From positions 46,831,597 through 46,895,596 of the forward strand of contig CM074512.1 in the NCBI GenBank assembly GCA_037379345.1: a DNA stretch of 64,000 nucleotides. Direction: 5' to 3'. The notes beneath the pieces were generated by a model that saw only the letters and a program-made list of their open reading frames with translations, was not told the DNA's origin and made no database searches. Position numbers and translations under genes: made by a program. Below, one piece after another: positions 20,830 to 61,233 of the stretch (within the stretch, counting starts at the first letter, position 1; every line of letters starts with the position of its first letter). The stretch is from Perna viridis. Taxonomy: Eukaryota.

Positions 20830-23570
20830 TTATTTGATGAAAAAATTACATTTTATATAATTTCCTATTCGTTTAGGCAAAGGAAGCAAGTCGAGTTTAT
20901 GGCATATGTTCGAACGCAAATGACAAAATATGGTTAAAATACAAATGTCTGTCAAATGTCTTGGAAGGTCTGCACATTTCCGCAAAGAATCTAAAACATG
21001 GGGTTTCATTAATGAGGCAATAGTACTGTTCTCTTTGTCACAGTAACACAACCATTTTGAAACATTGTAACCATGGTTACACAGAATATTGACTATGTCC
21101 ATTGATTCTTTATACGCAGCAAGTTCAAACGCGTCTATTTTGATATCTTGGTCCTGCAGGCGACAAAAGCATACTGTTTCCAGTCGACATTTCCATTCAA
21201 GTAGTGTCGAAATCGTTTTAAGATCTTCGTTTTTAACAGCAAGCATTAGTGGAAATATTTCGGAGAAAGGTACTGCAAAATATATTCTTTTTGTTTTCAC
21301 GTGACGGAAGTAATGCATTTAACACTATACAATTAAACAAACATAATCGCTAATGCATTCATGAGTTTTGAAGAGGTTAAAAAATATGACCTCTAGAGAT
21401 AAAACACGTCATTTATTTCAAAAGATGTAATGTTTAACAGTAACCAGTTGACCTATTTGAGAAAAAATATATAAATATTTAAAAGTACTCAGATATATTG
21501 CCCAGTCCACCGATTATACTAACAATTGTTTCAGTTATCGAATATATTTATTTTGTTCACAGACGTCTTGTCCATAATCATACTGACTACAAAAATTCAA
21601 TTAAGTACCACGACTTGTTCGAATTCTTCAGGCCTTGGAGATTTCATTTAAAACTAGGTCTACACCAAAGTACAACTAGATTTTTATAAGTACTTTAAAA
21701 AGACTGACGTTTACTTGCCTTTGATATCAACATCTGCTTCATTTTCAAGAAAATATCTTACAAATTGATGGCACTGAGATTTGACAGCCATCATGAGTGG
21801 GTTGCAGCTTTCTGTGTCTGAAATATTCATAGCCGCTCCTGCTTCGGTCATCAGAACAACCATAGCTGTGACGTCACTGGGCGGTTCTAATGCTTCCCAT
21901 TTCTGTAGGTGTTGGGTGAAGATATGAGTCAACGGGGTTCTACCTGTGCCATCTATGATGTTGAGGTCGACATTCTGTTCCAGTAAAAATTGAACAGCCG
22001 CAACCTTCTTGGTAATAACGGCTAGCTGTGAATATACAAGTAGTAATAAAACAAAATGAGTACTTATACTTGTTCAAATGCCTATTTATAAAACGGCTGG
22101 AAATTTTTTTAATGAAATCAGCGGATGCTTACCGCTCTACACATTTAATTGGAACTTGGGTTGCTCGTTCCATTTCTGTTTTCTGTGAATTTTGCAGTAG
22201 GCTATTCGTTGTCGTTGGTTGCTTCTATCACCGTTTTTTGTCTTTGCACCTTCACTTTTTCGATTTAAGCGCGAAAATCTTTGATTTCTTATCAAAATTT
22301 TGTAAGAATCAAGTACAGGTTCACATAAGCATCACGCAGTTGGTGATACGTCCAATTTTTTGTAAACCTCTTCAATAGTGTAAATGTATCAATTATACAT
22401 GTTCATGTTCCACCAGTGGTTTGATAACCGGAAACTGGGAAAGTGTGGAAGGTATGACTGGTTACACAGTAAACTGGAGTGAGGAAAGAATGGCGAAAAA
22501 ATTATTTTGTAATAGAATTCATCGAATCTGTTGTGGCTAATACTATTACTTTTCCAGCTTACAATACTGCTCTACTGATACTTTTAACATATATATGTTA
22601 CTGTCTGAAAGGTTATTCACAAATTTGAATTACCACATTCCTGTATATTTGCGTGAACCTATATTTAAGACTAGTGGTGCATTATGAATTTTGATTGAAT
22701 TTTAAACGAGGATTTGTTCATGGCGTAGTATTAAAGCTATAGTAAGCGGGATCGAATTCATATCCATGTGTATATACCTTTCGGACGGTCTTGACCAATA
22801 TCGACAATGCTTGGATGTCCATTGTAGTTTATTTTATACCCGAACTTGAACAAAACAATACTTGAGTTTTGTTCTTTTTCTTTCAATATTACATGTATTT
22901 TGTTGCCTCTACAAGTCTAATTCACCCGTTACTGCAAAAGGGGGAGGGTTGTCAGAGTTGAAACAAATCTAAAACCGATCTTTGAAATTAGATGGTTACA
23001 TTACATCTTACTTACGTGTAATGCATTTCGGTTGTCTCGATGACTTTTAACGTTTACATCAGTCCCGTGAGACACCAATATTTTCATTATCTGTATATAG
23101 TTCTCAATATTCTTCAACCACATTAGTGCCATTAGCGGTGTAAAACCCTGATGGTTTTGAATATTTGGGTTACCACCGTTTTGTAAAAGCATTTCGGTTA
23201 TCACCTCTGACCCGTATTCGACAGCAAAATGTAAAGCGGTTCGCCCACTGGAATCTTGAATGTCAATTGTTGAAGAATTTGCTTCGAGTAATAGTTTAAC
23301 AATATCCAGATTGTTTGCGCAAATTGCGTACATTAATGACGTCATGCGGAATTTATCGGCTGCATTTATCAAGGCGCCGTTCTCCAACAGTAGCCGTATA
23401 CACTCTGTGCGTCCTTTTGCACAAGCAAAGTGTAAAATTGTTTTGCTGTTGACATGAGAAAGGTCATCAAAGTATTGATTCACATCTGCACCTTGAACTA
23501 GTAGTTGTTGTAACAGAAGATAGTCATCGCTATCTACGGCGTGATACATTTCAGCAGATAAATCAGCCAT
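20830..23570 (-). CDS. Ankyrin repeat and SOCS box protein (ASB-like), paralogue 1
   Basis: Exons 23570-23016, 22025-21719 (GC donor), 21272-20830. Ankyrin repeats (TILHFACAKGRTECIRLLLENGALIN, GRTALHFAVEYG) and a C-terminal SOCS box (HLTDICILTI...LPLPKRIGNYI). Confidence 0.88.
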
Positions 23571-24682
23571 TTATTTTTTTTGTGCAATACAAGAAGAATA
23601 AGTAGTGTAACTGACCTGAGAAATGCTTGCTAGGGAGTATTTACCTACAAAAAGATATATATGAGGTGTATGCACCAAAACGTCAAAACACTGACAGCAC
23701 AACAGAGAGAACATGTCGCACAATACACAGAAACTAAGCGTTCGCGCACGCGCACAATCACACTAGCACACTCTCTTACACACACATATCCATGCAAACT
23801 AAAAACGAACATTACGAATCCCACAAAATTAGGTTGGCAGTTCTTGCTTTTTGTAAGACACTCACAGCCCTGCTCGTTAAAGGACATGTTCAGTGAAAAA
23901 ATCAATTTCAATAAAAGTTATCAGTTACCTTCAAATACCGGTACATGTATTTAGGAAAAAAAATCGAATGCGAATGACCTTGCTTCAATACTAAGTGTTC
24001 AGGTGAATTAACTTGAACACAACGATGTCATTTATTTGACCGATTCAGCCCATGTCTCTCTAAAAGAAATGCCGAAGAAAATTAATTTGTTTTGAATGCC
24101 ATGATTTCTAACAGTGTGACAATCCTGTTAACTTGTTTTACTTAAAATAAATACTATTCATCTACTAAACATGGTATGTACCACACAAACTTTGAAAAAG
24201 TGTTTTTTTTCTTTAAAGTATTCTATTTTTACCGTTTATGTTTCCAGTGTCATTTCGTAATTTTGTTTGTATGTTTGTCTCTTGCTTACTATTTGTCTGA
24301 TGTTATCCTCATGAACCAATAATTTTGATTGATCACTGTGCTTCAGTTCATTTCACTATGGTTTAAGACATGAACTTTACTAAAACAAAGAATCCTAAAG
24401 GATACTACTATTGATAATCTAAATATATAATTGTTACTTACATATAATTTGGAAGCATCTTCTATCCTCTATCTACATGTATATTTACTAAGAATGTTGT
24501 TAATTAGTGTAGAGGTAATCAAGGGAGAGACTTACACAAGTGGAAGCTATGACTAGTTCTTTTAGATGTGCTCGTTGAGGGGAGTAATAAATACATTTAT
24601 AAGATCATAAGAGTATAAGTGATTAGAAGTAGTTGTCGATCATTACCCACTATGATCAATAATCAGATCTCTTTCTGATTCT

Positions 24683-25200
24683 GCCCCGTGCAGGTCCGGG
24701 TGTTAAAAGAATAAGCCTGCAGCAGCGCTAAGCTTGTCGTAAAAGGCGACTAAATAGTACTCAGATCCCTAGCCGGGGGCTAGGGCGCTCTTCCCACAGA
24801 GCAACTGGGATGTGTGCCCCAGGTGGTGGAATGGGGTACCCCTATCGTGTTACATGCTGGGGTTGTCAGGCTGTAATACAGAAAACCTGACCGCAAACCA
24901 TAGTGGTGCACCGTGTTGGGAAAGATGCCACGTTCCTCGCACGTGAAAGAACCCTACTGTGGTATTCTCCCGGAGTAGGAACCATAGGGCTCCGCAACAG
25001 GAAGCTAAATTGCCCGACCCTACCAAACTCTCCCTATTTCCAGTGGCAATCAAAATTTGTTGACCCCATTGTCCTTGTGTCCCATCCCTTTTTCATTTCA
25101 TTATCATTTCATGTTCATTTTATCATCAATTTCATGTTCATCGTCTGAATATAGCTGAATATTGCTGCTCGGACGTTAAACCCCAACAAACAAAACCAAA
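24683..25200 (+). mobile_element. Non-autonomous retroposon (SINE-like) with 12-bp target-site duplication
   Basis: CTTTCTGATTCT at 24671-24682 and 25201-25212. GC-rich, hairpin-rich body ending ...gacgttaaaccccaacaaacaaaaccaaa (CAAA-type tail). No meaningful ORF. Confidence 0.85.
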
Positions 25201-25476
25201 CTTTCTGATTCTTCACAAATTTAACGTTCGTATTTGTTGTGTCTTTTCACCAACGATGACATCAACGGTTTGGGTATAAATGCAATTTGGAGTCGGAACG
25301 ATAACTTTATTATAGCGCCTCCATACTTCCCTTGTTCAACGTGTCATAGATATCCTTTCCTTTTTCGTCTATCCTGGACTCAACATTTTAAGAGCAACTC
25401 GGCGGGTGTTTAAAAACATGTAATTTTGTTTATAATATGACAAAAAATGGAATAATCAGTTGTTTGGAAAAAGTAA

Positions 25477-25650
25477 TACTGTGAAAATACTGGAAGACCA
25501 AACCACGAAATTTGGTTCCAAATGAAGAGGAGATTTCAATTGAAGTGTATAATGAAAACCTCAAAACCACGAATTCAAGAATCCACGAATTTGTGTTTCT
25601 TCCAAAATCGACGAAAATTGGCATCCAAGAATTAAATTACTTTCACAGTA
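25477..25650. mobile_element. TA-flanked MITE (TACTGT...ACAGTA; Tc1/mariner-type ends)
   Basis: tactgtgaaa ... tttcacagta termini. The internal ccacgaaatttggttccaaa is also present inverted at about 32220-32248. Confidence 0.6.
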
Positions 25651-25746
25651 CTATGTCAGATTAACAAATACTGTACATGTATATTAAAAGTATGAACGAA
25701 CTCTATAACAATGCTGCTTTATTCTGGCTGGAAAAAATAATGGTAA

Positions 25747-28700
25747 TCACAAAAAGCAAATTTTCAGATATGTCTGGATGCTTACTGGCAATGGTAAAGC
25801 GTCAACTTTCTCAGAAATATTTGAAGATATAGCTTTATAAATAGAAAGCGTACAACACTTTAACAACGAATTAGGAGAGTTAGCAGACAAACGCAACAAG
25901 TTCAACATATCAATATTATTTTTTAATGACGACGGTACATTGTCACCACACTCCGCTTCTCTGAGATATTGGTGTTTAGATGTATTGTAACCAGCAAACA
26001 CTAAAAGTTCGACTATATCCCATAATTCCTGGTTAACCGCCAGTTGAAATGGATCAAACTCGTAGTCATTGCGCCGAATGCGACATCTACCGACGACATC
26101 GAGACGACAATTCCAATTCAATAGAGCTCTAATTGTCTCAATATCTTTCTGTTTCACAGCGAGGAGTAATGGAGTTAATCCATTGTAATGAACTGAAATA
26201 AACAGATAGTATGTCATGTAATTAAGTTACAAGGAAGTGTGGCGAAACATCATTTGACTTTCAAGTTCGAATTGTACTTTGATTAATTAAGTCTACGGTG
26301 AATTGGCTATTAAATGGGAACTATTGAACGGTTATATTTTGTTATTAAAAAAATCTTAACGCCTCAAAACAACTCAAAACCCATAAAAATACTAATAATT
26401 GTATTACATAGCCTGCATCATTCAAACTGTTACATGTGTCAACTATGCTAGTTTTACTGGAAACAAGTAACGACTGACCTAAAATTAGAGTCGACTGGAA
26501 GTCAAAGATCCGGGACCCACACCCATGAATATCCAAGCACGCAACATACAACTTAGACGCACAACAGTAGAAACTAAGTATTTTCATTTCAAGGAAGTAC
26601 CTTCCGTTTTTTCTGCAGTTAAACAGAGATTTTATTACATTTCATTTCCTTTGAAATCTTAAAGTATATTCACGACATGGTTTTCCCATGATTGTTTGCT
26701 ATGTTATAGTATTAAGTTCAAGATCAAGCGTTATAGCGTTCATATAAATATAGTTGTATATTGTCCAATGTTTGATGGTAATTTTTTATTTAATTTGTCT
26801 ATTCTTGTCATCATAATTTGTGCAATTAAATGATATTGAAAAATTGTGAATCCCTCGATTATTTTTATTTTTTTTATTTGTGACTCATGTATGGGGAAAT
26901 GCATTGTTGTTGCAAGACTTTTATCGGATAAAACTCACTTGCAGTGTGACGGGTGCCACTGGTGGACCAGGAAATGCTTACACTTCCGGAGCATCTGGTA
27001 TCACTCCGCGGTTTTGTTGAGTTCATATGGCTAGTGCTTTAGTTTGTGTGTTTGTGTTAGGTCATGTTTTCCTTATCTTCAGTTTTTATATGTATATGTA
27101 ATATATTTCATTCGGATCGCCACATAGTATATTCAAAACGTCTTTAATTGTTTCCTGTTTTCACGTTCACGCTAAGAACTTAGATTTTGATATATCTGAA
27201 TTGTCAAATTATAGACTCCTCGGTATTTTTTGCTAAAATTTGCCCACTTTCTTTAAAATTGTTTTGCCTTCTGGTTTCAAACTGATTCTCATGTCGTGAT
27301 CGTAAAACTGTAGTTTAGATCCCTTCTGTGTTTTTTATGGTTTTAGATTTTGAGACTGTCTTTTATTATAACTGATATTTTGTCAAGACTTTTTAAAGAT
27401 AAATACAGCGAATAACATTCGAGACCTATTCCCAACGTTGGTGCAACGTCATGAGTTAGTTGGGGTAAATAGATTTATGAGTGGTCAGAAAGAAATTTAC
27501 CCAAAGTTTAACTAGAACTCGAATTTCAACTCAAACTCTGATTCGAACTCATATCTGAAACACAAAATTAATTGATGTTTCACCACACTCATTACATTGG
27601 GACTAGAACAAGCTTTAAAAAGTATAGCGTAGTTTTAAAATTGACATACAAAACATTGAATAATTAAACCAAACCATTGTACTTTAATTAAATGTGTACT
27701 TCCTGGAATTCATGACAGTATAAAATAACGAATAGTGTTTCAAAAATGTCAAGACAAATTAATATAGCTCCGAATCATATTGTCCCCGTAAAATATATTG
27801 ACACGACTTTCCAGGATCAGAGTAGATTGGTCTAGAATATAAGAGACGCAGTATAAATTTGCTTATTCTAAGATTTTTGAAGCTTAAGTTAAACTACAAG
27901 GAAAATAAACTCACATGTAATGTTCACATCAGCTCCATAATCGAGGAAAAATCGAACAAGAGGTGGACATCTTGCATATGTCGCCATAATCAATGGATTG
28001 GAAAACTCAGTTTTCGTTACATTTAGGTATGTGCCACTCTGTGTAAGAAGTATAACAATAGTCATAACATCATCAGCGACCTCGGAGTTATGTTTATTGG
28101 CGGGAATGTTGTAGCATATTAAACTTGTCAATGGTGTTCTTAAAGCTGTGTCTATAACATTGGGATCGGCATTCTGTTTAAGCAAAAGTTCCACAGCGTC
28201 GACTTTCTTTGTTATTGCAGCATGCTGAAAGAGTAAAATACGTGACTATGACGGAGACTTTTGAAGAATGAAAAATTCTCTTTTCGAAATCTAACAAAAC
28301 AATTTTGTATATAAAAGTACCAATTCTAATTTACATATCGGCTGTTCTCAAAAGAAATTATAATATTTCACAGTTAAGATCAAGATTGGATCAAGGATGT
28401 ATACAAACCCTTAAAACGGTGTGTCGCATAATACAGTTATACATTAAAACACATCTGAAGGTATACGCAAGCTGGCAAATTTTAGTGGACCCACTTCAGA
28501 CATATTTTTATCTCTACAAAGAAACGCGGGACGAAATGAGTTACATCATTTTGAGACTTACATGCAAAGCTGATCTTTTTTCTTGAAGATCCCGGAGATG
28601 AACATCGGCGCCGTTTTCCAGCAAGATATTCATGATCAAATAGTAATTTGAAACGCCCTTTGCTGACATCAACATCATTAGTGGTGTTACACCAAAATCG

Positions 28701-29116
28701 GTAGAAATGTTTGGATCTGCACCAAGGTCTAAAAGCAGACGAACGAACTTTTCAGACCCTTCCTCCACAGCGGCATGGAGAACAGATTTGCCGTATTTAT
28801 CTTGCGAATCTGCAATATCTGGTTCATTCTTTATCAAAATGCCCGCTACTTCATCACGATCTGCAGCTATGCAGTATCTTAAGGGCGTCATACCCCACGG
28901 ATCACGTGCATTTACTTTGGCGCCATTTTCAAGGAGTACTTTTACGCAGTCTGTTCTGCCTTTTTCACATGCCATATGCAAAATTGATTTCGTACTTATT
29001 CTTGCAATGTCTTCAAAAACTTGGTTCACATCTGCTCCATTTGATATCAATCTCCTCAGTTCCTCGCAATTATCGTCCACAATTGACTTGTATAATAGAG
29101 CGGATAGGTCTTCCAT
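25747..29116 (-). CDS. Ankyrin repeat and SOCS box protein (ASB-like), paralogue 2
   Basis: Exons 29116-28562, 28224-27915, 26192-25747. Ankyrin repeats (SILHMACEKGRTDCVKVLLENGAKVN, GKSVLHAAVEEG) and SOCS box (SLLKCCTLSI...LPLPVSIQTYL). Confidence 0.9.
26945..27090 (+). mobile_element. Related Penelope-like 3' motif in ASB-2 intron 2
   Basis: gacgggtgccactggtggaccaggaaatgcttacacttccggagcatctgg has the same architecture as cgggtg...gcttaccctaccggtgcacctgg. Confidence 0.5.
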
Positions 29117-30097
29117 TTCACACTGCTATGCGCTATGCACCTATAAAGTACGAACACATTGTATAAGTTATCAGACAGTTTAATTTTACTAGCAATTCGT
29201 GTTAATTAGATTCTGTTTTCTTTTCGTGAAAGGCAGAAGAAAGATTATTTCTTGAAATACAGAGATAAATCAGTGTCAGCCGGCGTCGCAGTTTTAATTA
29301 TCAGTATAAATCAACCCACACTGAGCCCCTAATCACAATACATAAGTAGCAAATACGTGCATTGCGCGATATATTTATGAATTTTGATGCATCAAGTCTT
29401 TCATACACACATTTTTTGAAAGTATAAAAACTTCTTTTCGATTAAAATAACTTCATTAACACTTACTTTTGATGAAATTATCAAGGAATTATCTTTTCCT
29501 CAATTAACACCTGTTTTTCGTTGCATTCCATCATGGCTGAGGTAAAGGTCGTTCGTGCATTAGGTAAACATCATAATGTTCATGTTAGTTATCGTTGTAA
29601 GGATATAAATACGCTTAATTCAGGTAACATCAAAGATGTAATTGTCTAAAAGCTTTTGTTTGTAATTCTTTGTTGCTAAACACTTTCAAATCTACCCGTG
29701 TAAAATTTCACTGTTCCTTATCTGAACATCCAATAGATTTAGAAAGGCACGAATGGTATCCCAAATCACCAAAAAGATGCTACTAGCATAGGTGATATAA
29801 GACCAATTCAGGTCTTTATGATCTTATGCGGATCTAAAAGGGTGGTTGGTGGGCATATGCTCGACGGGTTTAGTTGATTATATAGAAAACACTGGAAGTC
29901 ACTGGAGCACCCCATCCCCTCTTATGTCAGTCAGTACCATGTACTCTATTTAGAATTTATAAATTTGCCACTAATTGTGTTACTTTGCTTGCTTGTGCCT
30001 TTTGTTACTTCAAAAATAACAGAGAAACCAACAACATTAGTAATAAAGGCTATTCATTGTTTCAGGGTCTAATTCTTCCATGTGAGACTAGTCCAAA

Positions 30098-32941
30098 ATG
30101 ACAGGTGAGGAAATGTCGACAATGCTCTACCATTCAGTTGACTGTAACAATTCCCTAGAGCTGCAGCGACTTATTGACAACGGCGCTGACGTTAACCAGC
30201 GTTATGATAACTACTCACATCGGAAATCTATCCTCCATTTTGCTTGTGGTAAAGACCATATCCTGTGCGTAAAAACACTATTACGGAATGGTGCATCCAT
30301 AAATATTAAAGATAAATGGGGTATGACACCTTTGATGTACTGCTTATGTACTGAAAATAATGACATTGCTAAGCTACTAATATCACGAGATAAGACGACT
30401 CTCGAAGCACAAGACATGCACGGTAGGTCTTCTTTGCATATAGCAGTCGAGAATGGACACGAAGAAATCATCAGCCTCTTATTGGAGTCTGGATGTGATG
30501 TTAATATTCAAAACGTCAACGGTTTGACTCCACTTATGTATCTTGTGGCAAGTAAAAGGATTGACTGTTCTACAAAGTTGACTAAACTTTTGTTAGAAAG
30601 TGAAGCTGATGTCAACATGCCAAGTTTTCGAGACAGGAGGACAGCTTTGCATGTAGGTTGTATTAGTAAACTGCAAGATTGTATACCGTTTTTCCAAAAA
30701 AGATAGAACACCTAGATACAAATATATAGTTCTTGGTAGAGATTCCTCATACTTTGTAGGAAATAATTCCAAATCATCTTCCAAATATACAGAGGAAGAT
30801 GTTTACAAAATGCTGGAATTTTTAATCGACAACATATTTGTCCCGTGTGGTGGCCGCTATTCAACAAACGGTCGGCATTCCAATGGGAACAAATTGTGCT
30901 CCTTTACTTGCTGACCTATTCCTTCACTCTTACGAGGCTGACTTTATAGCTGATCTGATCCGAAAGAAAGAATGTCGTTTGGCTAGATCCTTTAATCTCA
31001 GTTTCCGCTATATAGATGACGTATTATCTTTAAACAATCCTAATTTCGGGGATTTGATACATTGCATCTACCCCAAAGAACTTGAGATAAAGAATACTAC
31101 AGACACTGTAAAGTCAGCCTCATTTCTTGACCTACACTTAGAAATCGATGGTAAAGGAAAACTATTGACCAAACTTTACGACAAACGTGATGACTTTTCA
31201 TCCAAAATTGTCAACTTTCCTTTCATCTGTGGCAACATCCCTTTTGCTTTTGTTACTTTGTATGTATGATTTTAGTTACTTTATGTTCTTTGTTGTGTAT
31301 GTCTGTTTTCCATATCTGGTCTTTGTCCCTGGATTGCATTCATTTGATTACCGCTATAACGTTGGTTCCTTTGATTACTCCTTCGAACCATTTTCTCCGT
31401 ACCCATTCCAAGACTTTCTAAAAAAGACAGTACAAATTGCTTTGTTCTTTTAAAACACTAAAAATTAGCAATTTTTTTCTAGATTGCTGTGATGACCAAA
31501 AAGATAGACGCCGTTGAAACTCTGCTACAGTATTCTGCTGATCCAAATCAAATAGACACAGTTGGAATGACGCCACTTACAAATCTTTTGGACCATCATC
31601 AACATGGTCAAATGTGTGATGACGTCATGACAATAGTTGTACTTCTTCTCCAAGCAGGGTCAGATATGAACTTGTCGAAGTCTGATCTGAGTAACCCATT
31701 ATTTATGGCAATCAAGAGGAAGTTACCAGAGTTTGTTAGATTGTTCCTTCAGCGAGGGGCAGATGTAAATGTAAAATGTACGTCAGGTACAAAGAAATGT
31801 TACGTAGATAGAAGTACACGTGAACATCAAGTGAAAGGAACGCACATTTTTACCTGTATTCACTCATTCCGTAATTATATATTTTATGAAAATGTATCTA
31901 ATTCCATAATTCGAAATTTAATGATGACGCCATCAGAATAAGCGATTTCACAATGACCAGGAAAAAAATCACACGTACTGCAACACTCTATTTATCATTG
32001 GTGATTATACTTCCCGAACGACATTCTGGTTCAACGCGGAATTGCTGATTTTTTTATTCTTAATTTCTTAATAGATATGCAAACAGTTATTCTGATTTAG
32101 TTCAAGTTAGTCAATGCATACAATGAAAGTACTTTTATTCGTGGAAACCAATTTTCGTTGTTTCAGTTCGTAGATGATTTGACAACTCTATATTATACAA
32201 AAGAAATGGAAATTTCCTTTTCGTTTGGAACCAAATTTCGTGGTTTGTCAAATAAAACTATTCTTAAATAATATCGCTAACAAAGTATTTTAATTTGTTT
32301 TTCTATTACTGCAAGTCTCTGTGTGTGTGGTTCTTTCGATTACAATGCAGTCGAATTCGAACATTGGACTTCAAAAAGTCGTGTGTTGATGCTCCATGCA
32401 ATATTGTTTTTTTTTCAACAAATGTTTTCTCTATATCAATCAATGTAAATTTCGATCAAGTTAAGAAGACTTTCAAATTATAAGCTTTTACTCATTTTCA
32501 GTTCCAGACTCAAAGATAACTCCCGTCATGATGGCTGTTTCACAGAGAGATACTGCCAGCGTAAATATACTTCTTAACTGGAATTGTGACTTAAATGTTA
32601 CCACGAGGTGCTATATATCATCTGAGTATATTGACACCGATCCCTTCCAATTGGCAATATTAAAGGAAGCTTGGGACATCGTGAAATTATTTGTATTACA
32701 TGGGTACAATGTCTCCAGACTGATTTATCTCAGAGACATGAATGTCAGTGCTCCAGAAACAGTTAAAGACAATGGTGAAGTTTGGGACTTTCTTCGTCAT
32801 AATGCTTCATCTACAAAATCATTATTTCAAATAAGCATTCTGGCTATTTCTAGGGCAATAAGGCATGACATTTACAACAACCTGGAGTACTTGCCAATAC
32901 CAAAGAGAATTAAAGCTTATATGAAAGATTATTATCTTTAG
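30098..32941 (+). CDS. Ankyrin repeat and SOCS box protein (ASB-like), paralogue 3
   Basis: Exons 30098-30652, 31483-31777, 32502-32941, with the same intron positions and phases as paralogues 1 and 2. SOCS box SLFQISILAI...LPIPKRIKAYM. Confidence 0.88.
30668..31384 (+). mobile_element. Degenerate Penelope-like retroelement (RT fragment plus 3' end, internally deleted) in ASB-3 intron 1
   Basis: RYKYIVLGRD..., MLEFLIDNIFV, (frameshift) QQTVGIPMGTNCAPLLADLFL, FRYIDD, KLYDKRDDF, then a jump to the family's 3' tail ending gattactcc. Confidence 0.85.
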
Positions 32942-35900: not shown

Positions 35901-37030
35901 GTATGGAGAAATGGACCAAATAATCTGAAGAGCTGTTTTATGAGCAATCTTGGGGAAGCATTCATCAGCTAACGAACTTTTAGAATCAACAGGTCATCTC
36001 TGCTCATATGGTCCCATGTCAGTCTTATAGAAACTATTAAATATAACTCCTCGAAAGTCCGTTCGTTTGTACAAAATGTACTTTCCAATGTTGAAATAGA
36101 AAATTTATTAATCAGATCGGTTCTGGTAATCATTGTTTGATATAAGTGAAATTTTCGTGATCAACGAAAACTTATTATTCATGGTAGGTTTATGCTCTAT
36201 TTAGGACCGGAAAGTTATAATTGGTCTGTCAGATAATGTTAATACACCCAACATAAAAGAAGATTGGTAAATAAATATACATTTGTTCCATTTTTGTTCT
36301 CCTAAACCATGAATTAGAAAGTGTGATAGTACTACAGTTAATTGCCGTTGTCTTCTATTTCGGACCAATGTCACGTGTGGAAAATAGCAGCTTTCAATCC
36401 CCTCGAATAGCACGTCAACAAGTATGAAACGATTAAATGAATATCAAAATGCCATCACCATGCAATGATATTCAGATGCCAAACTCCTTCACTTTATACC
36501 GGTTTGGCAAAATATTCAGATGCCAAAACTTAAAAGACAATGAAAGTTGTTTATACTGTCAAAGCTTAAAGAAAAACTAATCCAAATGTAGACTCCTTGT
36601 TGGTCGAAAGTTGCATAATTAGCTTAATCAATAGCCTGTCATTAAATACTTAAATGTAAAAGTTAGAACAATATTTATAATTTTGAAAGTTTTGACACAT
36701 TTCAAGTATACTATCCCTTACTAATGCATTACGAAAAAGAAGAATTTATTTCGATGTCAGAGAAATAAACAGTGTTAACCTTATCAGCAACTAAGTATTT
36801 CACACGGTAAAACACTTGTAAAATATAATAAATGGTTAATTCAACTCCCCACTAATAGATTAAACAAATTCTACCATTTAAACCATTTTTGTCAATTTAT
36901 CTTTTGACTTTTCTTGCACTGTTTGAAGATAGTTTCATACATGGTGAGAAAGAACCGAGAAAAATGTCTCGGGAACTGTCTCTGGTCGAATATTTATAGA
37001 TTTCCTTTGATTTTCTCTAGATGACTTAGC

Positions 37031-40000
37031 ATGATATATCGACAGATGGAAAATGGACTGTTTTTTCTTTGGACTATGTTTTATATCGGACTAATAACAG
37101 TAGAAGCTGTAAAGAAAGAGAACAGGTGCATGCGCCACTATTTTGTTGCTACAATAAAACATCCATCAAAAGATTGTGAAACGAAGGTAAGATAGTTCAG
37201 ACTATTTCATAATATAAAAAAAACTAATGAGATTTTTAAACAAGTTTTTCGTTATAATACACTCTCTTATCATTGTAATATCTAAAATTTAATTTATCCA
37301 CTTTTTCCAATAATCCTTGTACGCGAGTGATAACGTCATTGCAAGAAATCCATAAACTTATTATTAATGTAACACAGTATACCGGAAAAAAAGTTCCAGT
37401 ATGTGGCTCTTTTGTGCTTTGTATATAAATATATATATATACACGTTTTGTTGTACGCGTGTTGTAAAGAGTAATCAAGTTAGGAAACCAAGATTCTATC
37501 GGAAATCAAAAGAATGCAATCCTGGGACAAAAACCAGACAGAGAAAACAGGCAGGCACAACAAGGAACATAAAATAACCAAAATAATACATACAAAGAAA
37601 AAGTAATCGCTACTGCACTACAAACTGGGAGCAAGTACCGAGTGCACCGGGAGAGTAAGCTTCCTGGTGTCACAGTGTTGTCTAAGAATTTCCTTCGTTT
37701 GCACCTTTGATATTTTTTCACATAATATTATACAAATTAAATGTTTCGGTAAAAACATAGTCTAAACGGGTGGATCCAGACATGTTGAAAAGGGGGTTGA
37801 TGGGACATAAATTGCCATTTTTTTGGTCCATTTTACACATAAAAATGAAAAAATTTCAACAAAAGGGGAGAGGGGGTGCCAAACCCCTCAGAATCCCCCA
37901 CTGGAAAATACATGTAAGTATAAGCCATTATTAGTAAGGGACAAAACTCCTTGGTGGGGAGTTCCCAGTTGTTCCCAAATGTAAGTTAAAGAAGATTCAT
38001 TTTATGTACTTCTCTTTTTGTCTCTAGTTAAGTACAATGCAAATGGATCCCAATGTCATCTCATACTGTAATCACTTTATGCAGCATTTAAATGCTCTAC
38101 CTTACATTTTTTGGTGCATATGAACATACAAGTTGATTTCATACAGCGGATTAAGTCTTTAAGGATTCATGAATCTAAATACTTCAATAAACTTAGTTGA
38201 TATACTAAATTACTTGAACAAGATATATTTTAATCCTTCATGTTTTAAGGGAAAATGAGGGAAATGATATTTAGACACTTGTAGTTTTTAGAACTCGATC
38301 GTGATAATTGTTTCCATGTCCCATTTTATCATTTGCGTGGTAAATGTTCTTTCTTCACTATAAACACCCACTTCGTTACGACGTTTCCTTTTTAACAAAT
38401 AACCGTTATCATGATTCAATAACAAGAATACTATACTAGGCTTTATGTTCTTCTCGGATGACATGAATAATGAAACAGCAAAATGCTAACACTATTGGTT
38501 ACTTTAATCGGAGCTTGTTAAAAGGCTATCTTTAGTACTCTCAAAGCATAAATGCCACCAGTTGCAGGAAATCAAGTCTCCAGTCGTAACATAGATTGCA
38601 ATTCTATCGAATAAATAGAACTTAAAAAGACGATAATAATCAAGCACAAAATATCGTTTAGCATCTGATGTTTTCATAGTTTACGATAAAGCTTTAATGA
38701 TGGGGTAACACAATTGGGTGTTGTCGCGACAATTGTGATCTAATTAAGACTTTTATACTGTATTTAACTTTTGATCTAAATTCGCAACACATTAAGCTGT
38801 TGGATTTTGGCATGTTGTTATATTTGAAACAAAATACAAATGATTCTTTAATCCAAACTCTCTCAGACAACACGCGTTGTGAATTATTAGAAAACTGAAA
38901 AACTGCTGTGATAATAACTATCGTAAAGTATTCATTCATACCCAGACTGATTCACTTATACCCAATTATCGTTCATATCTAGTAAATCATTTATTTAACA
39001 GTATTATCTACAGTGGGCAATGTGCTTTTTTCCTATTCAAAACGAGGTTAATCTACTTGACGTCATCACCTTACCGGTGCGTTGTCCCACAAAATCGAGT
39101 GCACCCCTATTAATGCCATTCATCCAAACTTTTGCTTCCAATTGACCGTTTTATAAGCTGTTAAAAGCGTCTGTTTGGCTTGATGGTAGGCAATAAAGCA
39201 CTTGCTTGAATAAAATCAATGAGTATTCGAATACTTGATATATCAACAACGCAAAGGCGTTTTGCAAAATATTGAGTGCATGTTTACCTTATGTTGTTGT
39301 AAAAGTTGCGATCGCTGTTCATCCAGAACTGACTTTGTTTCAATGTATAGTCTATAGCAAGGATTTTTATAGTCTTCTATGAAAATCTTTGTTTAAAGAC
39401 CAATATGTGAAAGTGTACCTTTTATATGTGATTAGTTAAACCTTGGCCTCCTAAGTGGAAAGAAACTAAAACAGTTTTACTTGTAGTAAATTTAGGTCAA
39501 GGTTACTTTACTTTAATTTGGTTGTTTGAAAATTGGAGCATGTGCATCTTTAGGAGCCAGACTTTCAACTTTATCTAATGTTTTACCGGAAAATTAGAAA
39601 AGTAAAAGAAAATACATACATTTTGGATTAAGTCTGAAGACATTATTTTCGCATTCTTAAAATATTCAAAAAGTTAAGACAATTGGTTTTGTTGTAATTA
39701 CATGTTCCCACTTATGAAATCATAACACACTGCGTGGATGATGAGCTCCACTTTCTTACATAAACTTTTTCATTTTTAGTCTATTGAGAATTTTTAACCG
39801 ACTTGTGATAAAACAACAACAAAACAAGCTGGAGGCCAATGAGGAGCAACAAACAGCAAAAGCATTATTTGCAGTCCAGGGTACTTTTTTTAAGAAAGGT
39901 GGAATCCAGAGTCTGAGTCTTGACTATAGAAAAACACTGCTCATTACAGCTTAAATGAACGCGCTAGTTCTCTCTTAAATTATTTTTTTAAGATCTTGCT

Positions 40001-40260
40001 TTAGCAGTAACATTTTGTATTTTCAGAATATATTGTTGGCACGATGTGAAGGACACTGTAGAAAGTCAAGGACAGACCCTCATATATCATTTTCTCCTGT
40101 GTTATACACTCCATTTAGATATACTTGTATGTGCTGTAGACAGGCATTATCAATTATGAAAGCAGTACGTTTGGATTGCAAGGATGGGGGAAATTTTTAT
40201 GCAACGTATAGATATATCCTACGATGTAGGTGTCGCCATTGTTCTAACAAGTGGAGATGA
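37031..40260 (+). CDS. NDP: Norrin-like secreted cystine-knot protein
   Basis: Exon 37031 (or in-frame ATG 37046)-37186: MIYRQMENGLFFLWTMFYIGLITVEAVKKENRCMRHYFVATIKHPSKDCETK (signal-peptide-like start). Exon 40027-40260: NILLARCEGHCRKSRTDPHISFSPVLYTPFRYTCMCCRQALSIMKAVRLDCKDGGNFYATYRYILRCRCRHCSNKWR. Shares the human Norrin motifs CMRH, LLARCEGHC, PFR..C.CCR and ATYRYIL.C.C..C. AATAAA at about 40615. Confidence 0.92.
37466..37674 (-). mobile_element. Diverged 3' fragment of a Penelope-like element in the Norrin intron
   Basis: The reverse complement has gcttactctcccggtgcac...ctcccagtttg...tgtcccaggattgcattctttt...ttgattactct. GTGTTGT occurs on both sides (37459-37465 and 37675-37681), a possible TSD. 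Confidence 0.65.
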
Positions 40261-42867
40261 TCATTCATCAAGGATACACAAGAAAGAAGGCCAAAAAGGG
40301 AAACAAAATTTTTCGTGGATTACAAACTTTCTTTGTTTCACCTGTTTTATGTTCAGAGAATTTCATTCTAACTTTTTAACATGATTTTACCACTAGATTC
40401 TACGAATTTTTTTCTCCTAACCCATATCAATATGGGATGTTACTGTTGGATTTATTTTCAGAGAATGTTTCAACTTTAATCATGAATCAGGCAATCAATT
40501 CATTACATTTATTGACTTACATGTTTAGTATTAATGTAATACATGACTGTGATATATACATGACTCTTACATGTACATGTATAGACAGAATCAGTTATGT
40601 TTTTAAAGTCTATAAATAAATGTTTTACTGTATATAAACTTTCAACCAGTTTAAAAGCACGTTTGTCAACAAAACGCCTAGTTCTTGCTATAATCTTTAG
40701 TTTTTGAAAAACTTCGAACCTAACAATGATCCATCATTGTAAAGTGGTATTATATGTACATTTTTTGCAATGAATTCTGGAATTTTGAAAATAGAATGGG
40801 GATCAGAAAAAAAGGACTGGTGGTAAAATTACAGGCAATTATTTGCTCATTTTTTACCCCAATTTTGTATAAATTTAAATTTTTCCGACAACTGGGGGAG
40901 AGGGCCCCAAACAAAAACTAGAACTGTATACTTTGGAAAAGAGAAGAATCTTCTACTTGGAGTCAATACTGGAAAGTTGTAAGTAAAGGGGACATCATTT
41001 CTTTGTTTGCAGAGTTTTGATTTTGTGGATTTCACTCAAAGTTCTGGTTGTAATTAACCTCTACACACACAAGTTGGATACTAGCTTTATTTTATGGAAA
41101 GTTTAAGTTCATTCTCTATAAAAAAATCAGGCAGTGGGTGAAATACTGTATATAATAACCCACCACTTTGACAACCATTCAGAGGCTCAATTTTTTAACA
41201 TTCAAATGCAAACTTTTTATAAATGTACAGTGATGCAGAGACCAAATAGTGGTCATTTAAAATAGAGGTGTCCTTCAAATGAATGAAAGTTTTTGTAGTA
41301 AAATTTGTACCTTTTTGACATGCATGTCTCACTTTTTTCCATTTTGTCTGATTCTTACTAAGATGTACTTACTTAAGATATCCTTTTTCAATTAGAATTT
41401 AATGAAATCACTAGAAAAACAACTAATTGAGGAAGTGTATGTTTTTCATATTTTTTAATATCTGAAAGATCTTAAAAGAATTCTCATAAGCTTTATACAG
41501 CTATCAATATTGTTTCAGCTGATTAAAGACATGGGGTAAATGTGTATTGGATAGACAGATATGAAAGCATGTCATTTTTATTTGTACATGTAAAAATCAT
41601 AATGATCATAACATCAAATTCAAAAGTTCATTCTTATACAAGTCCATTCTTGGCTATGACAAAAGATAGCTTCATGTTTAGAAAGTTATTATCTATCACA
41701 ATTTGTTGACATGGATCCATGTGTTAGGAAGGTGATATTAACCAGTTCTACAACAAAATATATGATAAAACAAATTAACTCAGCTTTATAGTATCCTGGC
41801 AAAAAAAAATGGACCACCTTATTACCTTCCAAAAGACATACAATGTAATATATGCCATTTAGCATATTATATTATTATCTGTTTCGACAATTTTATTAAA
41901 TAAAGCAACCAGAAAATTGTGGTTCAAGGGCAGTAATTATAATAAGTGAATAATTTATAACAGAGACCTAATTGTATGATGTGTGGTACAAATTGAAACA
42001 AAGCAGACTTATGGCAGCTCATTTACAAGTATCTGCTTGTATAATTTTGCAATAATGTATAGTGTATGTAATTACTTCATAGGTTTCACATTGGTGATTT
42101 TTTATAAATTCTAAATTGTGTTTTAAAAATATATTCAATATTGAGTACCTAACAAAACCTTGTGGAAACAAGCAAACAGTATATCTTTGTATATAACTTT
42201 AAGGTTCAAGGGGTGATTCCACTGAATTCTATGGTCTAAAATAAAAATTATTAGTCCAGAAAGAAAAAATTTAAATCTCAACGAAACTGTTAACCAACCT
42301 TCAAAACAATTGTTACAAATGCTTCTAAGATGTTTGAAGTAAATTCTACAAGGTGATATGAAATGACATATATAATTTTGACACCCACTTAATTAATGAA
42401 GTCCCATAACACTGACATCAAATCTTGAATTTTCTGCAAAAAGTCACAGATCATTAGACCATCATAAAAAATAACTGTGTAGAGTTTGAAGTAGATTAAA
42501 CCAGGCATCCTTAAGAGAAGGTGTGACATGTTTGTGAGGGATGGACAGATAGATAGAAAGGTATTTTTATACCATAATATGAATCACGGTCTGTCTTTGA
42601 AAGGGGTATATTTAATAAAATTATTTATAAAAGAAACTAAACTTTGGATTTTTTTCTTCTGTTCAAACAAAAATGTCTCTTCAAACATTTGGATGCACTC
42701 AAAACAATAAAAATTCTATATATATATTCAAAACATAAAACTGTCTTCAATAAACTGAGTTGAACAGCTCAAGTTCAGTATAATATACAGAATGTACAAT
42801 GAAAATTTGAGAATTTTTTTTGTTTTTTGTTTATCAGAAGAATCTTACCTAAGTATCGACTAATATC

Positions 42868-48800: not shown

Positions 48801-51577
48801 AATGAAAATAAGTTCCTACTATACAGGTGTATGTGTCACTTAGGACATTATATTACATGGTTATCAAGACTGTGAAATTCATCACAAGAAAGACTTTATT
48901 TTGACAAAGCTTTTAACAAATATTGGTACATGAAGTTGAGAAAGATCAATTTCAAATCATCAAAAATTAAACTGTAAACTTTATCAATACAGTCACACAT
49001 ACATGTATTCAGTATTCACAATATTTTACTCACATAAAATCTATTACTGTTTAGGACTTAAACCAATTAAAAATAATTTCTCATATTTTAGGGTAACAAG
49101 CAAATGAAACACCTTCCTTACCATTTATTGTGTCCATGAAACAATGTCGAAACACCCTAACAGGGGTAAAAATTAGGAAATACATGCTGGTAGCCCATAC
49201 CACGTTTTCTATATGTTCAACTAAATTTCACCCAAAAGGTTGGGTAGCCAAGCTGAAAATCTAGTAGCCATGGACTACTGGGTGACTGCAAATTTTTATC
49301 CCTGCCTTATCACTTCTTGGGAACAATAAAGAAGTAAAAAGAAATGTCTCCCTTCGCCATAGCCTTTCATGAAAAATAACCTGAGAATCAAAGCCTTTAT
49401 ATTCAACTTCCTTAGCTATATATACATGTTTATAAACAATAAAGGTAATAGTTAAGAGAGATATATAGATCCAACTAACCTGTTTGTGGACATTTATATC
49501 TGAGGTTGTAGGTTGTTCACCAGTTGTGTACCAGCCCAAGAAATCCATGTCACTAAACACCTGTTTAACTTTAAAATACAGAATTGAAAATTTAAAAATA
49601 GCTAATACTGAAGTTGGATCACACAAATTAACATGACCTACATAATTTTTACTTCTTGTCTAAGTCAAGACCTCAAGTTGAGGAAAGATATAAAGCATCT
49701 AATGTAAGAAAAAAAAGATACTAAAGAGAAGTGTAGCAATTGATTGGAGTACCTGTATATTAAGTGTTTTGACAAAAAGGATGTAAAGGTAACCATGGTA
49801 ACTTTTTTGTATATTTATATATTACATATTTTAATGTATTTAAAGACAAGAATGGAGTTCAATATGATTAAAACCTAATTAAAAACATCTATATAAAATT
49901 TCTTTCAAATACAGCACAAAATGTATAAAATATTAAATACTGTTATTTAACATCTAATGAAATTTACTAAATTACACATATAGATATATATATATACATA
50001 CACTGCTCCTCTTTCGTGTTATAATACTCCATATTTATAATGATTTCATCTTCAATTCTGTCAAACAACAATTCAAATGAATTCATCACCTCAATATTTC
50101 TTCCTTTCTGTTTTCCAATTACTGCACCGAGCACTAAATTAGAAATTCCATGAAAAAATTTAAGGAAAAATCAGTAAAATCAAGAAAACAAATGGTTTAA
50201 TACAGGTGCTTGCGTAATAAGAATGTTAAATGTACACATGTGGTGACTCATGCTCATGTGCATATAGATTGAAAAGTCCATTTTTCTTCATCCCGCTATT
50301 GGTACTATATTGGATAATTTTCTCACTGTATTTCTTTTTATCTTTATAACATTGACTGTGGACACTAACATGTGTACAATATACATATACAATTAATACA
50401 ATTAACACTGACAAATAGCTATGGTAAACCTGCAAGGTCACACTTAAATCCTAAATGGTAAAGAAATAAAAAAAAATGGTATATTATACTATTAAACATT
50501 ATAATAATGAAAATTCTGATCTGATATATCATGGGTCTAGATAAACAGCTGCAAGATACATGTAGCACAAAGTGGTTTCCAGCACATGAACAAACTCAAA
50601 CACCCTCAATTTCAGGACATCACCATGAAACATCAGGCTTAAGAGCAGCTCTATGTCAAAGACTATACATGTATTCTTGGGGTATGAACTTATGTTTCTT
50701 CAGAAGTACTTATTTTCAGGATGTTTCTGTCTCATATTATCATTTGTTTAATTTCATTGAGTGTAAAAATTGTTACATGACTAGATTATTTATTTTCATA
50801 ATATACTTAATGGGTTGTATTATCAACTGGGTCTACCATACTTATTGTTAGCTGCGAAATCATAGCTCATGATCTTTTTTTTTTTTTGATTTTGCAATCT
50901 AGGAAAATACAAAAAAAATAGTTAGAGCTACGTTTCGCAGCTGACTTATCGTCAGAAAAATCATCAATATCCAGTTTGCATAAAATATCAAGAGCTTAAA
51001 AAATAGTTTAATGATAGTTCCATTTTGAAAAACCATAATTCCTTACAAATCCTGGACATTTTGGCCCATAGTCATTTCAGACCATGACAATTAGGAGAAA
51101 GTATTTATAATTACGACAATTAAAACCATATATCAAGAATTTTTTCATATTGGAGGGTAAGAATAATATATCAGGGTAGCAAAAAATTATGAAGGGTGTT
51201 TTGAATTTATATTATATATTTTTTCAGGAGTCTTTCAGGGTTTCATCTGTAGTGAAATATGGAAGCCAAACATTTTGTTCTACATGTAAGTATTGGAACA
51301 CAGTCACTTGTTTATATCAATAATAGGGCTTTAATGTCCACAAGTACGTGTTGATAGATAAGCCCGATTATTTCAATGATAGGATAATTAGATTTAAAAG
51401 AAAAAATAATATTAATAAACCTTGAGTTGGTCTTCCTTCCTGAGCTCGAACTCTGGTCCAATGCTCTGAAATATTCATGATGACAAGTGGATGTAACGAT
51501 ACTGACACACTTCCAGATGCGTTTGTAGAGGCCATTACTCCGCCAGAAGGGCTGTCAATTTCCATTTTCGATGCCAT
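42868..51577 (-). CDS. COPS6: COP9 signalosome subunit 6 (MPN domain)
   Basis: Exons (minus): 51577-51421, 50133-50002, 49568-49480, 48736-48674, 48325-48275, 46765-46651, 46288-46196, 45276-45176, 44117-44049, 42939-42868. Motifs: [106 protein letters not shown]. Confidence 0.95.
47222..47341. repeat. Near-perfect 120-bp hairpin (MITE-like) in COPS6 intron 5
   Basis: ccttttcacaaaaaatcgtaagtgtaaaattagtcgtaagttatgatgtcataata / tattgtgatgtcacaacttacaactaattttactcttgcgattttttgtgaaaagg. Confidence 0.85.
50847..50945. mobile_element. Short TIR element in COPS6 intron 1
   Basis: gttagctgcgaaatcatagctc ... gagctacgtttcgcagctgac inverted termini. Confidence 0.65.
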
Positions 51578-56800: not shown

Positions 56801-57143
56801 TCAGTTTGATCATTGTGATGGTAAAAACTGTTTGTCATTTTCCCCTGATGATCTATGTTCTCATGTGAACTCAGATCATAATTACTACGCAGCATGTAGA
56901 AACATTCTATCAGAGTATGCCAATGAACCTGCCATGGGTCTAATGGGTGGTTTACTCCATAATATGCCTAATTATGCCAAAGACGATTGGGATCTTGAAA
57001 ATTTACTTCATGAATGTGTGCATGGACCATCGCCAGAAAGTAGAATTAAAGTTAAGAGTAAACTGATTGATGCATTAGATAACCTTCGAAATGTAATGGA
57101 TAAGAATGATTTAGCCAAGGGGAAAAGATTGCATGACAAATGA
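53827..57143 (+). CDS. DIPK2A: Divergent protein kinase domain 2 family protein (DIA1/C3orf58-like)
   Basis: Exons 53827-54549, 55236-55358, 56056-56233, 56764-57143. Motifs: KCPACFG, NPEPLMLQTFPASEGWPFPTYYGACGR, ALYWTDLNFEN, VDLEDIIVVD, CLSFSPDDLC...DHNYYAAC, GGLLH. The start codon is uncertain (several in-frame ATGs). Probably co-orthologous to vertebrate DIPK2A and DIPK2B. Confidence 0.88.
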
Positions 57144-60351: not shown

Positions 60352-61233
60352 CGGTCGGCATTCCAATGGGAACAAATAGTGCTCCTTTACTCGCTGACCT
60401 ATTCCTTCACTCTTATGAGGCTGACTTTATAGCTGATCCGAAAGAAGGAATATCATTTAGCTAGATCCTTTAATCTCAGTTTCCGCTTTATAGATGACGT
60501 ATTATCTTTAAACAATCGTAATTTCGTGGATTTGATACATCGCATCAACCCCAAAGAACTTGAGATAAAGGATACTACAGACACTGTCAAATCAGTCTCA
60601 TATCTTGACGTACACTTAGAAATCGATGGTAAAGGAAAACTATTGACCAAACTTTACGACAAACGTGATGACTTTCAATTCCAAATTATCAACTTTCCTT
60701 TCATCTGTGGCAGCATCCCTTCAGCACCTGCGTATGGAGTGTTCATATCACAACTCATACGTAATGCCAGAGCTTGCCGAGACTCCGCAGACTTTTTGTA
60801 TCGCGCTAGAACTCTAACAAATAGGCTTCTGGAACAGGGTTATGTTGCTACAAGGTTGAAGTCATCACTACAGAAGTTTTATGGTCGTCATCATGAACTC
60901 GTGGATCGTTATGGTGTATCCATCTGCACATAAAAACTGATTTATCCAACGTGTCATAGTTTTCCTTTCCTCTTTCGTTTACCCCGTACTTGACCTTTTA
61001 TGAGCAAGTCGGCGGATGTTTCTAGAAAAGCAGAGGACGCTAACGCTACCGGTGCACCTGGTCAATTCTCCCAGTTTTTTGTGGAGTCCGAGTTGCCCAT
61101 TTACTTTTGTTACTTTGTATGTATTATTTTGGTTATTTCATGTTCTTTTTTTCTGTGTCTGTTTTCCATGTCTGGTCTTTGTCCATGGATTACATTCTTT
61201 CGAATAGAATCTTGATTCCCTTGATTACTCTCT
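60352..61233 (+). mobile_element. 5'-truncated Penelope-like retroelement (RT C-terminal half plus 3' region)
   Basis: VGIPMGTN, FRFIDD, YLDVHLEIDG, KLYDKRDDF, PAYGVFISQLIR, LQKFYGRH. High nucleotide similarity to 30869-31241. No C-terminal GIY-YIG endonuclease follows the RT. Confidence 0.87.

Follow-up and report, generated by a model that had tools for sequence, protein, structure and literature searches.

A transcribed Norrin-like gene in the mussel Perna viridis and candidate receptors for its product in the same genome

Introduction

Does a mussel possess Norrin and, if so, through which receptor might it act? Vertebrate Norrin (NDP) is a non-Wnt ligand for FZD4/LRP5-6/TSPAN12 with roles in retinal vessel growth and the blood-retina and blood-brain barriers, and work on the protein has so far dealt almost wholly with these vascular and barrier functions. 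The question is raised by a small two-exon gene at positions 37031-40260 of a 64,000-nucleotide stretch of Perna viridis DNA (assembly GCA_037379345.1, contig CM074512.1, 46,831,597 to 46,895,596 of the forward strand). We refer to this whole stretch as the window and use its numbering unless another contig is given. A preliminary description, made from the letters of the window, had taken the gene for an apparent Norrin orthologue. Here we report that it is very probably a single-copy, transcribed orthologue of vertebrate Norrin, and that the same genome encodes predicted orthologues of FZD4 and LRP5/6.

Gene structure and transcript

The gene lies on the plus strand. Coding exon 1 (37031-37186) opens with an ATG and runs for 52 codons to ...KDCETK, where it is followed by GTAAGA with the GT donor at 37187; coding exon 2 (40027-40260) begins after ...TTTTCAG and holds 77 codons and the stop. 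Translation of both exons returned the coordinates and reading frames originally described, and the two together predict a product of approximately 129 amino acids. They are separated by a phase-0 GT..AG intron of 2840 nt (37187-40026).

RNA was mapped on 36200-42100, using three raw RNA-seq runs with the same species label together with the contigs of another run. In run X1, a 658-nt complementary DNA (cDNA) contig links 36995-37184 with 40025-40492 at zero mismatches, and the same joint is found in two raw RNA-seq reads of run X21. With the cut moved by +2 the joint falls on GT..AG ends at 37186|40027, skipping 2840 nt. The spliced 37186/40027 transcript, the absence of which would have counted against the gene, is thus present. 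The 5' untranslated region (UTR) covers at least 36995-37030, the start of the X1 contig, which continues into the ATG at 37031 with no mismatch; the true transcript start may lie further upstream. The 3' UTR (40261-40646) is covered by X1 contigs spanning 40025-40492 and 40488-40646 and contains AATAAA at 40615-40620, while RNA depth in the orientation of the gene extends to ~40646-40730 and has faded by ~40730. Within the intron no exon-like RNA depth was seen except at a dispersed repeat. The 723-Mb assembly has one copy of the gene; the next best match to exon 2 has an E value of 0.25. In a second species, an uninterrupted 128-residue open reading frame (ORF) was found on a 1547-nt Logan contig.

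The intron repeat is itself transcribed and occupies ~37382-37775, with a core at 37556-37597 and a word depth above 1000 in run X1. Many RNA reads map to it in both orientations, and loose ends flank it at 37556 and 37597.

Similarity to vertebrate Norrin

The two exons were searched separately, and steps that needed a full-length protein used the Mytilus galloprovincialis orthologue P0001 (128 residues, 79% identical over exon 2). At its N-terminus the predicted mussel protein carries a 15-residue hydrophobic core (residues 10-24, mean Kyte-Doolittle hydropathy up to 2.06) followed by VEA|VKK, and so looks signal-peptide-like. Against 177,635 PDB sequences, exon 2 matched human Norrin chains with an E value of 5.9e-22 and 55% identity; the next families were mucin-2 (E 0.007) and the Caenorhabditis elegans alpha2/beta5 cystine knot (E 0.47), and zero DAN-family structures were retrieved up to E 10. 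Pairwise comparison of exon 2 with the product of mammalian norrin exon 3 likewise gave 55% identity. Exon 1 matched Norrin residues 37-58 in the PDB, stopping one residue short of the stretch matched by exon 2. Since the two matches adjoin one another on Norrin, the exons are colinear with it.

The exon 1 segment RCMRHYFVATIKHPSKDCETK aligns with residues 38-58 of Norrin, where the beta1-beta2 hairpin holds C39 and C55. Exon 2 corresponds to residues 59-133, with the knot cysteines C65, C69, C96, C110, C126 and C128 and the dimer cysteines C93, C95 and C131. In Norrin, eight cysteines form four intramolecular bonds, and C93, C95 and C131 provide the three intermolecular disulphides of the dimer (PMC4497409). 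All 11 cysteines (C39, 55, 65, 69, 93, 95, 96, 110, 126, 128, 131) are in register with human Norrin, and 50 of the 92 mapped positions are identical. The hydropathy profile and the alignments thereby bear out the signal-peptide-like start and the 11-cysteine knot at human spacing that had been noted earlier. The same applies to the motifs RCMRH, LLARCEGHC and ATYRYIL, which in the printed alignments have the same letters as in human Norrin. With an E value of 5.9e-22 for exon 2 alone, and with exon 1 matching the adjoining residues, the similarity to Norrin is far beyond chance.

Assignment to the Norrin family

A protein that shared its cysteine spacing with Norrin could still belong to the bursicon, GPA2/GPB5, DAN or mucin-type CTCK families, and Pfam, which reports for exon 2 a generic Cys_knot alone (29.8 bits), would leave room for this. 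The long identical motifs outside the cysteines and the 55% identity to Norrin argue otherwise, and we therefore looked at family membership by exhaustive search and by phylogeny. A HMMER profile built from two mollusc orthologues was run against 1.84 billion representative proteins and gave 47 matches at E <= 0.001, with a gap in E values between 1e-15 and 5e-8; the weaker matches are fragments or repetitive proteins. A word-indexed protein search with exon 2 had returned two candidates only, and breadth was taken from the profile search. Names were looked up for 30 of the 47 matches. Wherever a source names the gene, the name is norrin or norrin-like: this holds for Crassostrea virginica, Priapulus caudatus, three Branchiostoma, Amphiura and two Diadema entries, as well as for many fish, mammals, a snake, a caecilian and a hagfish. 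The remaining looked-up matches are 'hypothetical' or 'unnamed', lamprey products among them, and a Saccoglossus model carries the domain at its end. The names bursicon, GPA2/GPB5, DAN, gremlin and mucin are absent among these 30. RefSeq holds 'norrin-like' entries for oyster, priapulid, amphioxus, brittle star and sea urchins, as the preliminary description had rightly cautioned.

In pairwise comparison the nearest other family is bursicon, with 33% identity (E 7e-7) between exon 2 and a bursicon-like protein of the same genome. At least four bursicon-like genes are present in this genome, three of them clustered at C1:3.35-3.46 Mb (L026, L027 and L031) and one at C12:5.65 Mb (L029). L027 is a complete single-exon ORF of 157 residues whose relatives are named bursicon in Mytilus. 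The L027 protein is also identical to one on an unlabelled Logan run contig.

A maximum-likelihood tree was computed with 27 rows, leaving out GPA2/GPB5 and gremlin. Two rows of CTCK and DAN-like type, with branch lengths of ~10, fell inside groups in a first version and were removed for the rebuilt tree; one long-branch CTCK row floats in the 27-row tree. The bursicon-like proteins split from the Norrin side with a branch support of 95/99, and the window protein groups with that of Mytilus among the mollusc norrin-like sequences. Monophyly of Norrin appears in 50% of bootstrap trees; its cost is 0.7 log-likelihood units (approximately unbiased test, p 0.447), and it is not rejected. The grouping with bursicon or DAN that would speak against a Norrin orthologue was thus not seen in the profile search, the 27-row tree (GPA2/GPB5 and gremlin being outside it) or the pairwise identities.

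One result favours a different family. A protein-language-model search of the ESM Atlas ranked GPA2 and partner-of-bursicon clusters first for the Mytilus orthologue, with zero Norrin clusters among those listed. The kinship it suggests was followed as a lead and rejected, being contradicted by the alignment searches and the tree. Bursicon and partner of bursicon were also rejected on their own account (33% versus 55% identity, a separate clade, zero DAN match, and bursicon-like genes elsewhere in the genome), as was a CTCK tail of mucin/VWF type: the transcript encodes ~129 residues only, with a signal-peptide-like start, and mucin-2 scores E 0.007. Given in addition the lack of other-family names among the looked-up profile matches, the starred branch that splits off the bursicon-like proteins, and a cDNA that predicts a small stand-alone secreted protein as opposed to a mucin tail, we consider membership of one of these other families extremely improbable.

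Intron position, gene neighbourhood and conservation

In mammals and fish, norrin isoforms and fragments have their start or break point immediately ahead of MVLLARCEG. Mollusc norrin-like fragments either run from ...K into V, where the GT donor has been read through, or start at ...FQ before [HN][IV]LLARC. As these break points coincide, molluscs and vertebrates share a phase-0 intron ahead of Norrin residue 59, and the match between the intron after ...CETK and the vertebrate junction, first remarked from the DNA alone, is upheld.

The neighbouring gene on the minus strand has a JAB/MPN-domain exon at 49261-49626, identified by domain match, and a JAB/MitMem_reg gene also adjoins the split norrin-like gene in Mytilus (L057) and oyster (L058). 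The norrin-like/JAB microsynteny is conserved in three bivalves. Human NDP has MAOA and MAOB as neighbours; synteny with them was not seen at the mussel gene.

Members of the family are 36-60% identical to the Mytilus orthologue across phyla. Among 13 members from six phyla, the invariant residues other than cysteine fall mostly in the hairpins near HP, the P-F motif, K-A and A-x-Y-x-Y-I. Positions 93-96 read C-x-C-C in molluscs and vertebrates, C-x-S-C in echinoderms, the hemichordate and the priapulid, and R-x-S-C in amphioxus. On this pattern, the bridge-forming cysteines C93 and C95 are both retained, among the invertebrates compared, in molluscs alone.

These data also bear on whether the locus might be a decaying or silent copy without function. 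RNA depth is low (1-3 in samples of ~2 Gb), as might be expected of such a copy. Against this, the gene has an intact frame, canonical splice sites that are in use, a polyadenylation signal and 11/11 cysteines; it is single-copy, its synteny is conserved in three bivalves, and the family keeps its identity across phyla. We give almost no weight to a dead gene. Both this reading and assignment to another cystine-knot family were tested and are not supported.

On the side of the 3' UTR, strongly transcribed minus-strand sequence from 40731 onwards (40731-41912) marks this JAB/MPN neighbour as a convergent, well-expressed gene. In this sequence 71 nt at 41262-41334 are skipped by 10, 11 and 17 RNA reads in three runs, with the non-canonical ends TA..CT, which could be an allelic deletion or odd splice in the 3' part of the neighbour.

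Receptors encoded in the same genome

The genome holds four intronless ORFs for Frizzleds, each assigned by its best solved relative. The ORF at C6:33.138 Mb (L010) scores 700.6 bits against human FZD4, with the next Frizzled at 475. Its cysteine-rich domain (CRD) scores 231 bits to that of FZD4 versus 151 for FZD10, and its C-terminus reads ETIV; by these sequence measures it is a clear FZD4 orthologue. Where human FZD4 has M105, K109, M157 and M159, it likewise carries Met, Lys, Met and Met, and Lys109 and Met157 are found in FZD4 alone among the four mussel Frizzleds. Of the other three, L008 (C13:7.498 Mb) is closest to Frizzled-7 and was assigned to FZD1/2/7, and L007 (C13:27.600 Mb) is closest to Frizzled-5 and was assigned to FZD5/8. 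L006 (C6:6.626 Mb) has FZD4 as its overall best relative and FZD10 as the best for its CRD, and is classed as FZD9/10-like. L008 had been entertained as FZD4 from its ...ESVV tail; this was ruled out by its best relative, Frizzled-7.

A multi-exon gene with many YWTD exons lies at C8:10.005-10.031 Mb. Its last exon encodes three LDLa modules, a membrane span and PPPSP-type motifs, and one propeller exon scores 223.8 bits against the first propeller of LRP6 versus 193.7 against LRP4. Single-propeller chains were used for this comparison because multi-propeller LRP2/LRP4 chains inflate the total PDB score. The predicted architecture is that of LRP5/6 (Arrow). PDB scores, the CRD and gene architecture together thus locate FZD4 and LRP5/6 orthologues in the same genome, where the preliminary description had suggested looking for them.

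Further CRD-bearing frames were observed near the Frizzled genes. A 583-residue frame at C6:33147848-33149596, 8 kb from FZD4, has a signal-peptide-like start, a hydrophobic tail and three tandem FZD4-type CRDs that are 54, 47 and 39% identical to the FZD4 CRD, each being closest to FZD4. In its third, most FZD4-like CRD the Norrin-contact Met and Lys residues are lost, as judged by eye against the FZD4 CRD. More CRD matches occur at C6:33.165 and 33.177 Mb, and a two-CRD frame at C2:51.5 Mb. A second FZD1/2/7-type CRD frame (L009, C13:7533143-7533460) is 75% identical to L008, lies 35 kb away from it and is open for 232 residues only; it represents either a remnant or an intron-containing paralogue.

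Predicted functional sites and model of the complex

Residues of the functional sites of Norrin were taken from Chang et al. 2015 (PMC4497409). In the Fz4 site, 6 of 9 are kept in the mussel protein (R38, R41, V45, L61, A63 and K104) and three are changed (H43Y, D46A and K102I). The glycosaminoglycan (GAG) site keeps two of four (K58 and R107; R109D and R115N are changed), and the putative Lrp5/6 patch three of five (R90, R97 and R121; K54D and G112D are changed).

This partial retention of the heparin and LRP patches could be read in favour of a protein whose main task is to bind or antagonise BMP/TGF-beta-type ligands outside the cell, as related DAN-family cystine knots do, and a review does class NDP among BMP antagonists (PMC4079206). 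However, Pfam gives no DAN match for the protein, DAN-family matches are likewise missing from both the PDB and the exhaustive profile search, and the Fz4-binding hairpins are conserved. A role of this kind is quite improbable.

A complex was modelled from residues 25-165 of the FZD4 encoded in this genome, its CRD, and a pair of Mytilus P0001 chains, each covering residues 29-128. It scored 0.81, compared with 0.03 for the best of 3 controls; in a calibration that holds only roughly here, 51 of 78 solved complexes attain the score mark, as do 2 of 108 mismatched pairs. Runs agreed in at least 88% of contacts, with a partner pLDDT (a per-residue model confidence) of at least 82. The modelled ligand contacts correspond to human Norrin 40-47, 58-61, 104, 106-107, 122 and 124, and those of the receptor to residues 55-58, 105-114 and 152-162. 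These modelled contacts coincide with the interface of the solved human Norrin-FZD4 complex.

The same evidence bears on a further alternative, in which the Norrin-family protein is a hormone-like ligand of a type B leucine-rich-repeat G-protein-coupled receptor (the LGR4/bursicon-receptor class) and not of a Frizzled. Norrin has been proposed as an LGR4 ligand and bursicon counterpart (Deng et al. 2013, as cited in PMC3937510 and PMC9910494), and bursicon is the nearest other family to the mussel protein in pairwise comparison. By contrast, the Fz4-contact hairpins are among its best conserved parts, the mussel FZD4 CRD keeps the Norrin-contact residues, and the modelled complex with this CRD passes its controls. 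The genome also keeps its own bursicon-like genes, which suggests that the role of LGR ligand is already filled. We regard an LGR-directed ligand as unlikely and favour FZD4 as the receptor.

Other features of the window

At 20830-32941, tandem ankyrin-repeat exons, each then followed by a SOCS-box-like exon, occur on both strands and resemble ASB-like genes. A FAM69/PIP49 kinase-like gene occupies 53827-57143 on the plus strand, with a PIP49_C match at 56739-57143. Two similar reverse-transcriptase-like ORF fragments of a retroelement were found on the plus strand at 30838-31269 and 60526-60933.

Discussion

The window contains a new, RNA-supported member of a known family. The existence of the gene is not novel, given the automatic 'norrin-like' annotations in several phyla. 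A search of an open-access library found no study of invertebrate Norrin; a BLAST tally in echinoderms mentions it (PMC9590158), and it is reported absent in a liver fluke (PMC6114109). This genome combines an expressed Norrin orthologue, separate bursicon genes, FZD4 with the Norrin-contact residues and an LRP5/6-type gene.

We propose that the product would be secreted after cleavage of its signal peptide and would form a head-to-tail dimer locked by the conserved disulphides C93-C95', C95-C93' and C131-C131'. The beta1-beta2 and beta5-beta6 hairpins would bind the CRD of the mussel FZD4 orthologue, and recruitment of the LRP5/6 (Arrow) orthologue would then lead to beta-catenin signalling, probably without TSPAN12 and with a heparan-sulphate site weaker than that of vertebrates. 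So read, the protein would be a Wnt-independent FZD4 ligand of bilaterian age, put to use later by vertebrates for retinal and brain vessels. We lean towards binding to the FZD4 CRD as the more probable case. The whole beta-catenin chain via FZD4 and LRP5/6 is put somewhat lower than binding itself.

Several observations weigh against this proposal. Three positions of the Fz4 site are altered (H43Y, D46A and K102I), and D46A removes the salt bridge to Fz4 K109; GAG and putative Lrp5/6 sites are conserved only in part (2/4 and 3/5). A 2010 phylogenomic study reports zero invertebrate orthologues of TSPAN12 (PMC2965184). Expression of the mussel gene is low, and the language-model search pointed to other families. 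The modelled complex may owe its score to memorisation of the solved human structure of Norrin with the FZD4 CRD, the ligand used was that of Mytilus galloprovincialis (79% identical) paired with the receptor of this genome, and such a model cannot say which Frizzled is preferred, as close cousins of a true partner also pass. For these three reasons the model shows likeness and not binding. The dimer-CRD model called for in the preliminary description passes its controls and uses the known interface, a pass that may stem from the structure already solved.

On a wider scale, Norrin-FZD4-LRP5/6 could be an ancestral bilaterian, Wnt-independent system, older than endothelium and TSPAN12. Molluscs, priapulids, ambulacrarians and chordates would have kept it, and the lineages of flies and nematodes would have lost it. 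The loss in these two lineages would then be why the system has been treated as a vertebrate one. We offer this tentatively, at slightly less than even confidence. That a mussel holds a Norrin orthologue together with FZD4 and LRP5/6 indicates that the Norrin family predates vertebrate blood vessels, and the specificity of Norrin for FZD4 may be much older than vertebrates. If the system is indeed ancestral, Norrin is a paralogue of bursicon and not its vertebrate orthologue, and bivalves become a simple system for tracing the original role of Norrin; an ancestral, non-vascular role of the pathway is directly testable in the mussel. The coexistence of Norrin and bursicon genes in one genome does not agree with the published view of Norrin as bursicon's orthologue in vertebrates (Deng et al. 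2013, as relayed in PMC3937510).

Compared with known systems, bursicon and partner of bursicon resemble the mussel protein in having an 11-cysteine knot and a similar size, and are the nearest other family at 33% identity. They differ in forming a separate clade (95/99) and in lacking the Fz4-binding hairpin motifs. Vertebrate Norrin (PDB 5BPU, 5BQC and 4MY2) is far closer: both proteins are ~130 residues long, with a signal peptide and a single cystine-knot domain, and their mature parts are 54-55% identical. They have in common all 11 cysteines, those of the three intermolecular bonds among them, a phase-0 intron before residue 59, most Fz4-contact residues and the motifs RCMRH, LLARCEGHC and ATYRYIL. 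In contrast to vertebrate Norrin, the mussel protein carries the substitutions listed above in the Fz4 (H43Y, D46A, K102I), GAG (R109D, R115N) and putative Lrp5/6 (K54D, G112D) sites, has no N-terminal extension ahead of the first cysteine, and belongs to an animal without endothelium-lined vessels. The 'norrin-like' RefSeq proteins of invertebrates (Crassostrea virginica XP_022344437, Priapulus caudatus XP_014672473, and those of Branchiostoma, Amphiura and Diadema) belong to the same family and differ from the mussel gene in being automatic models. Its bivalve relatives share both the two-exon structure and the JAB/MPN neighbour, the window protein being 79% identical to a hypothetical CTCK protein of Mytilus galloprovincialis and ~50-60% identical to the oyster protein.

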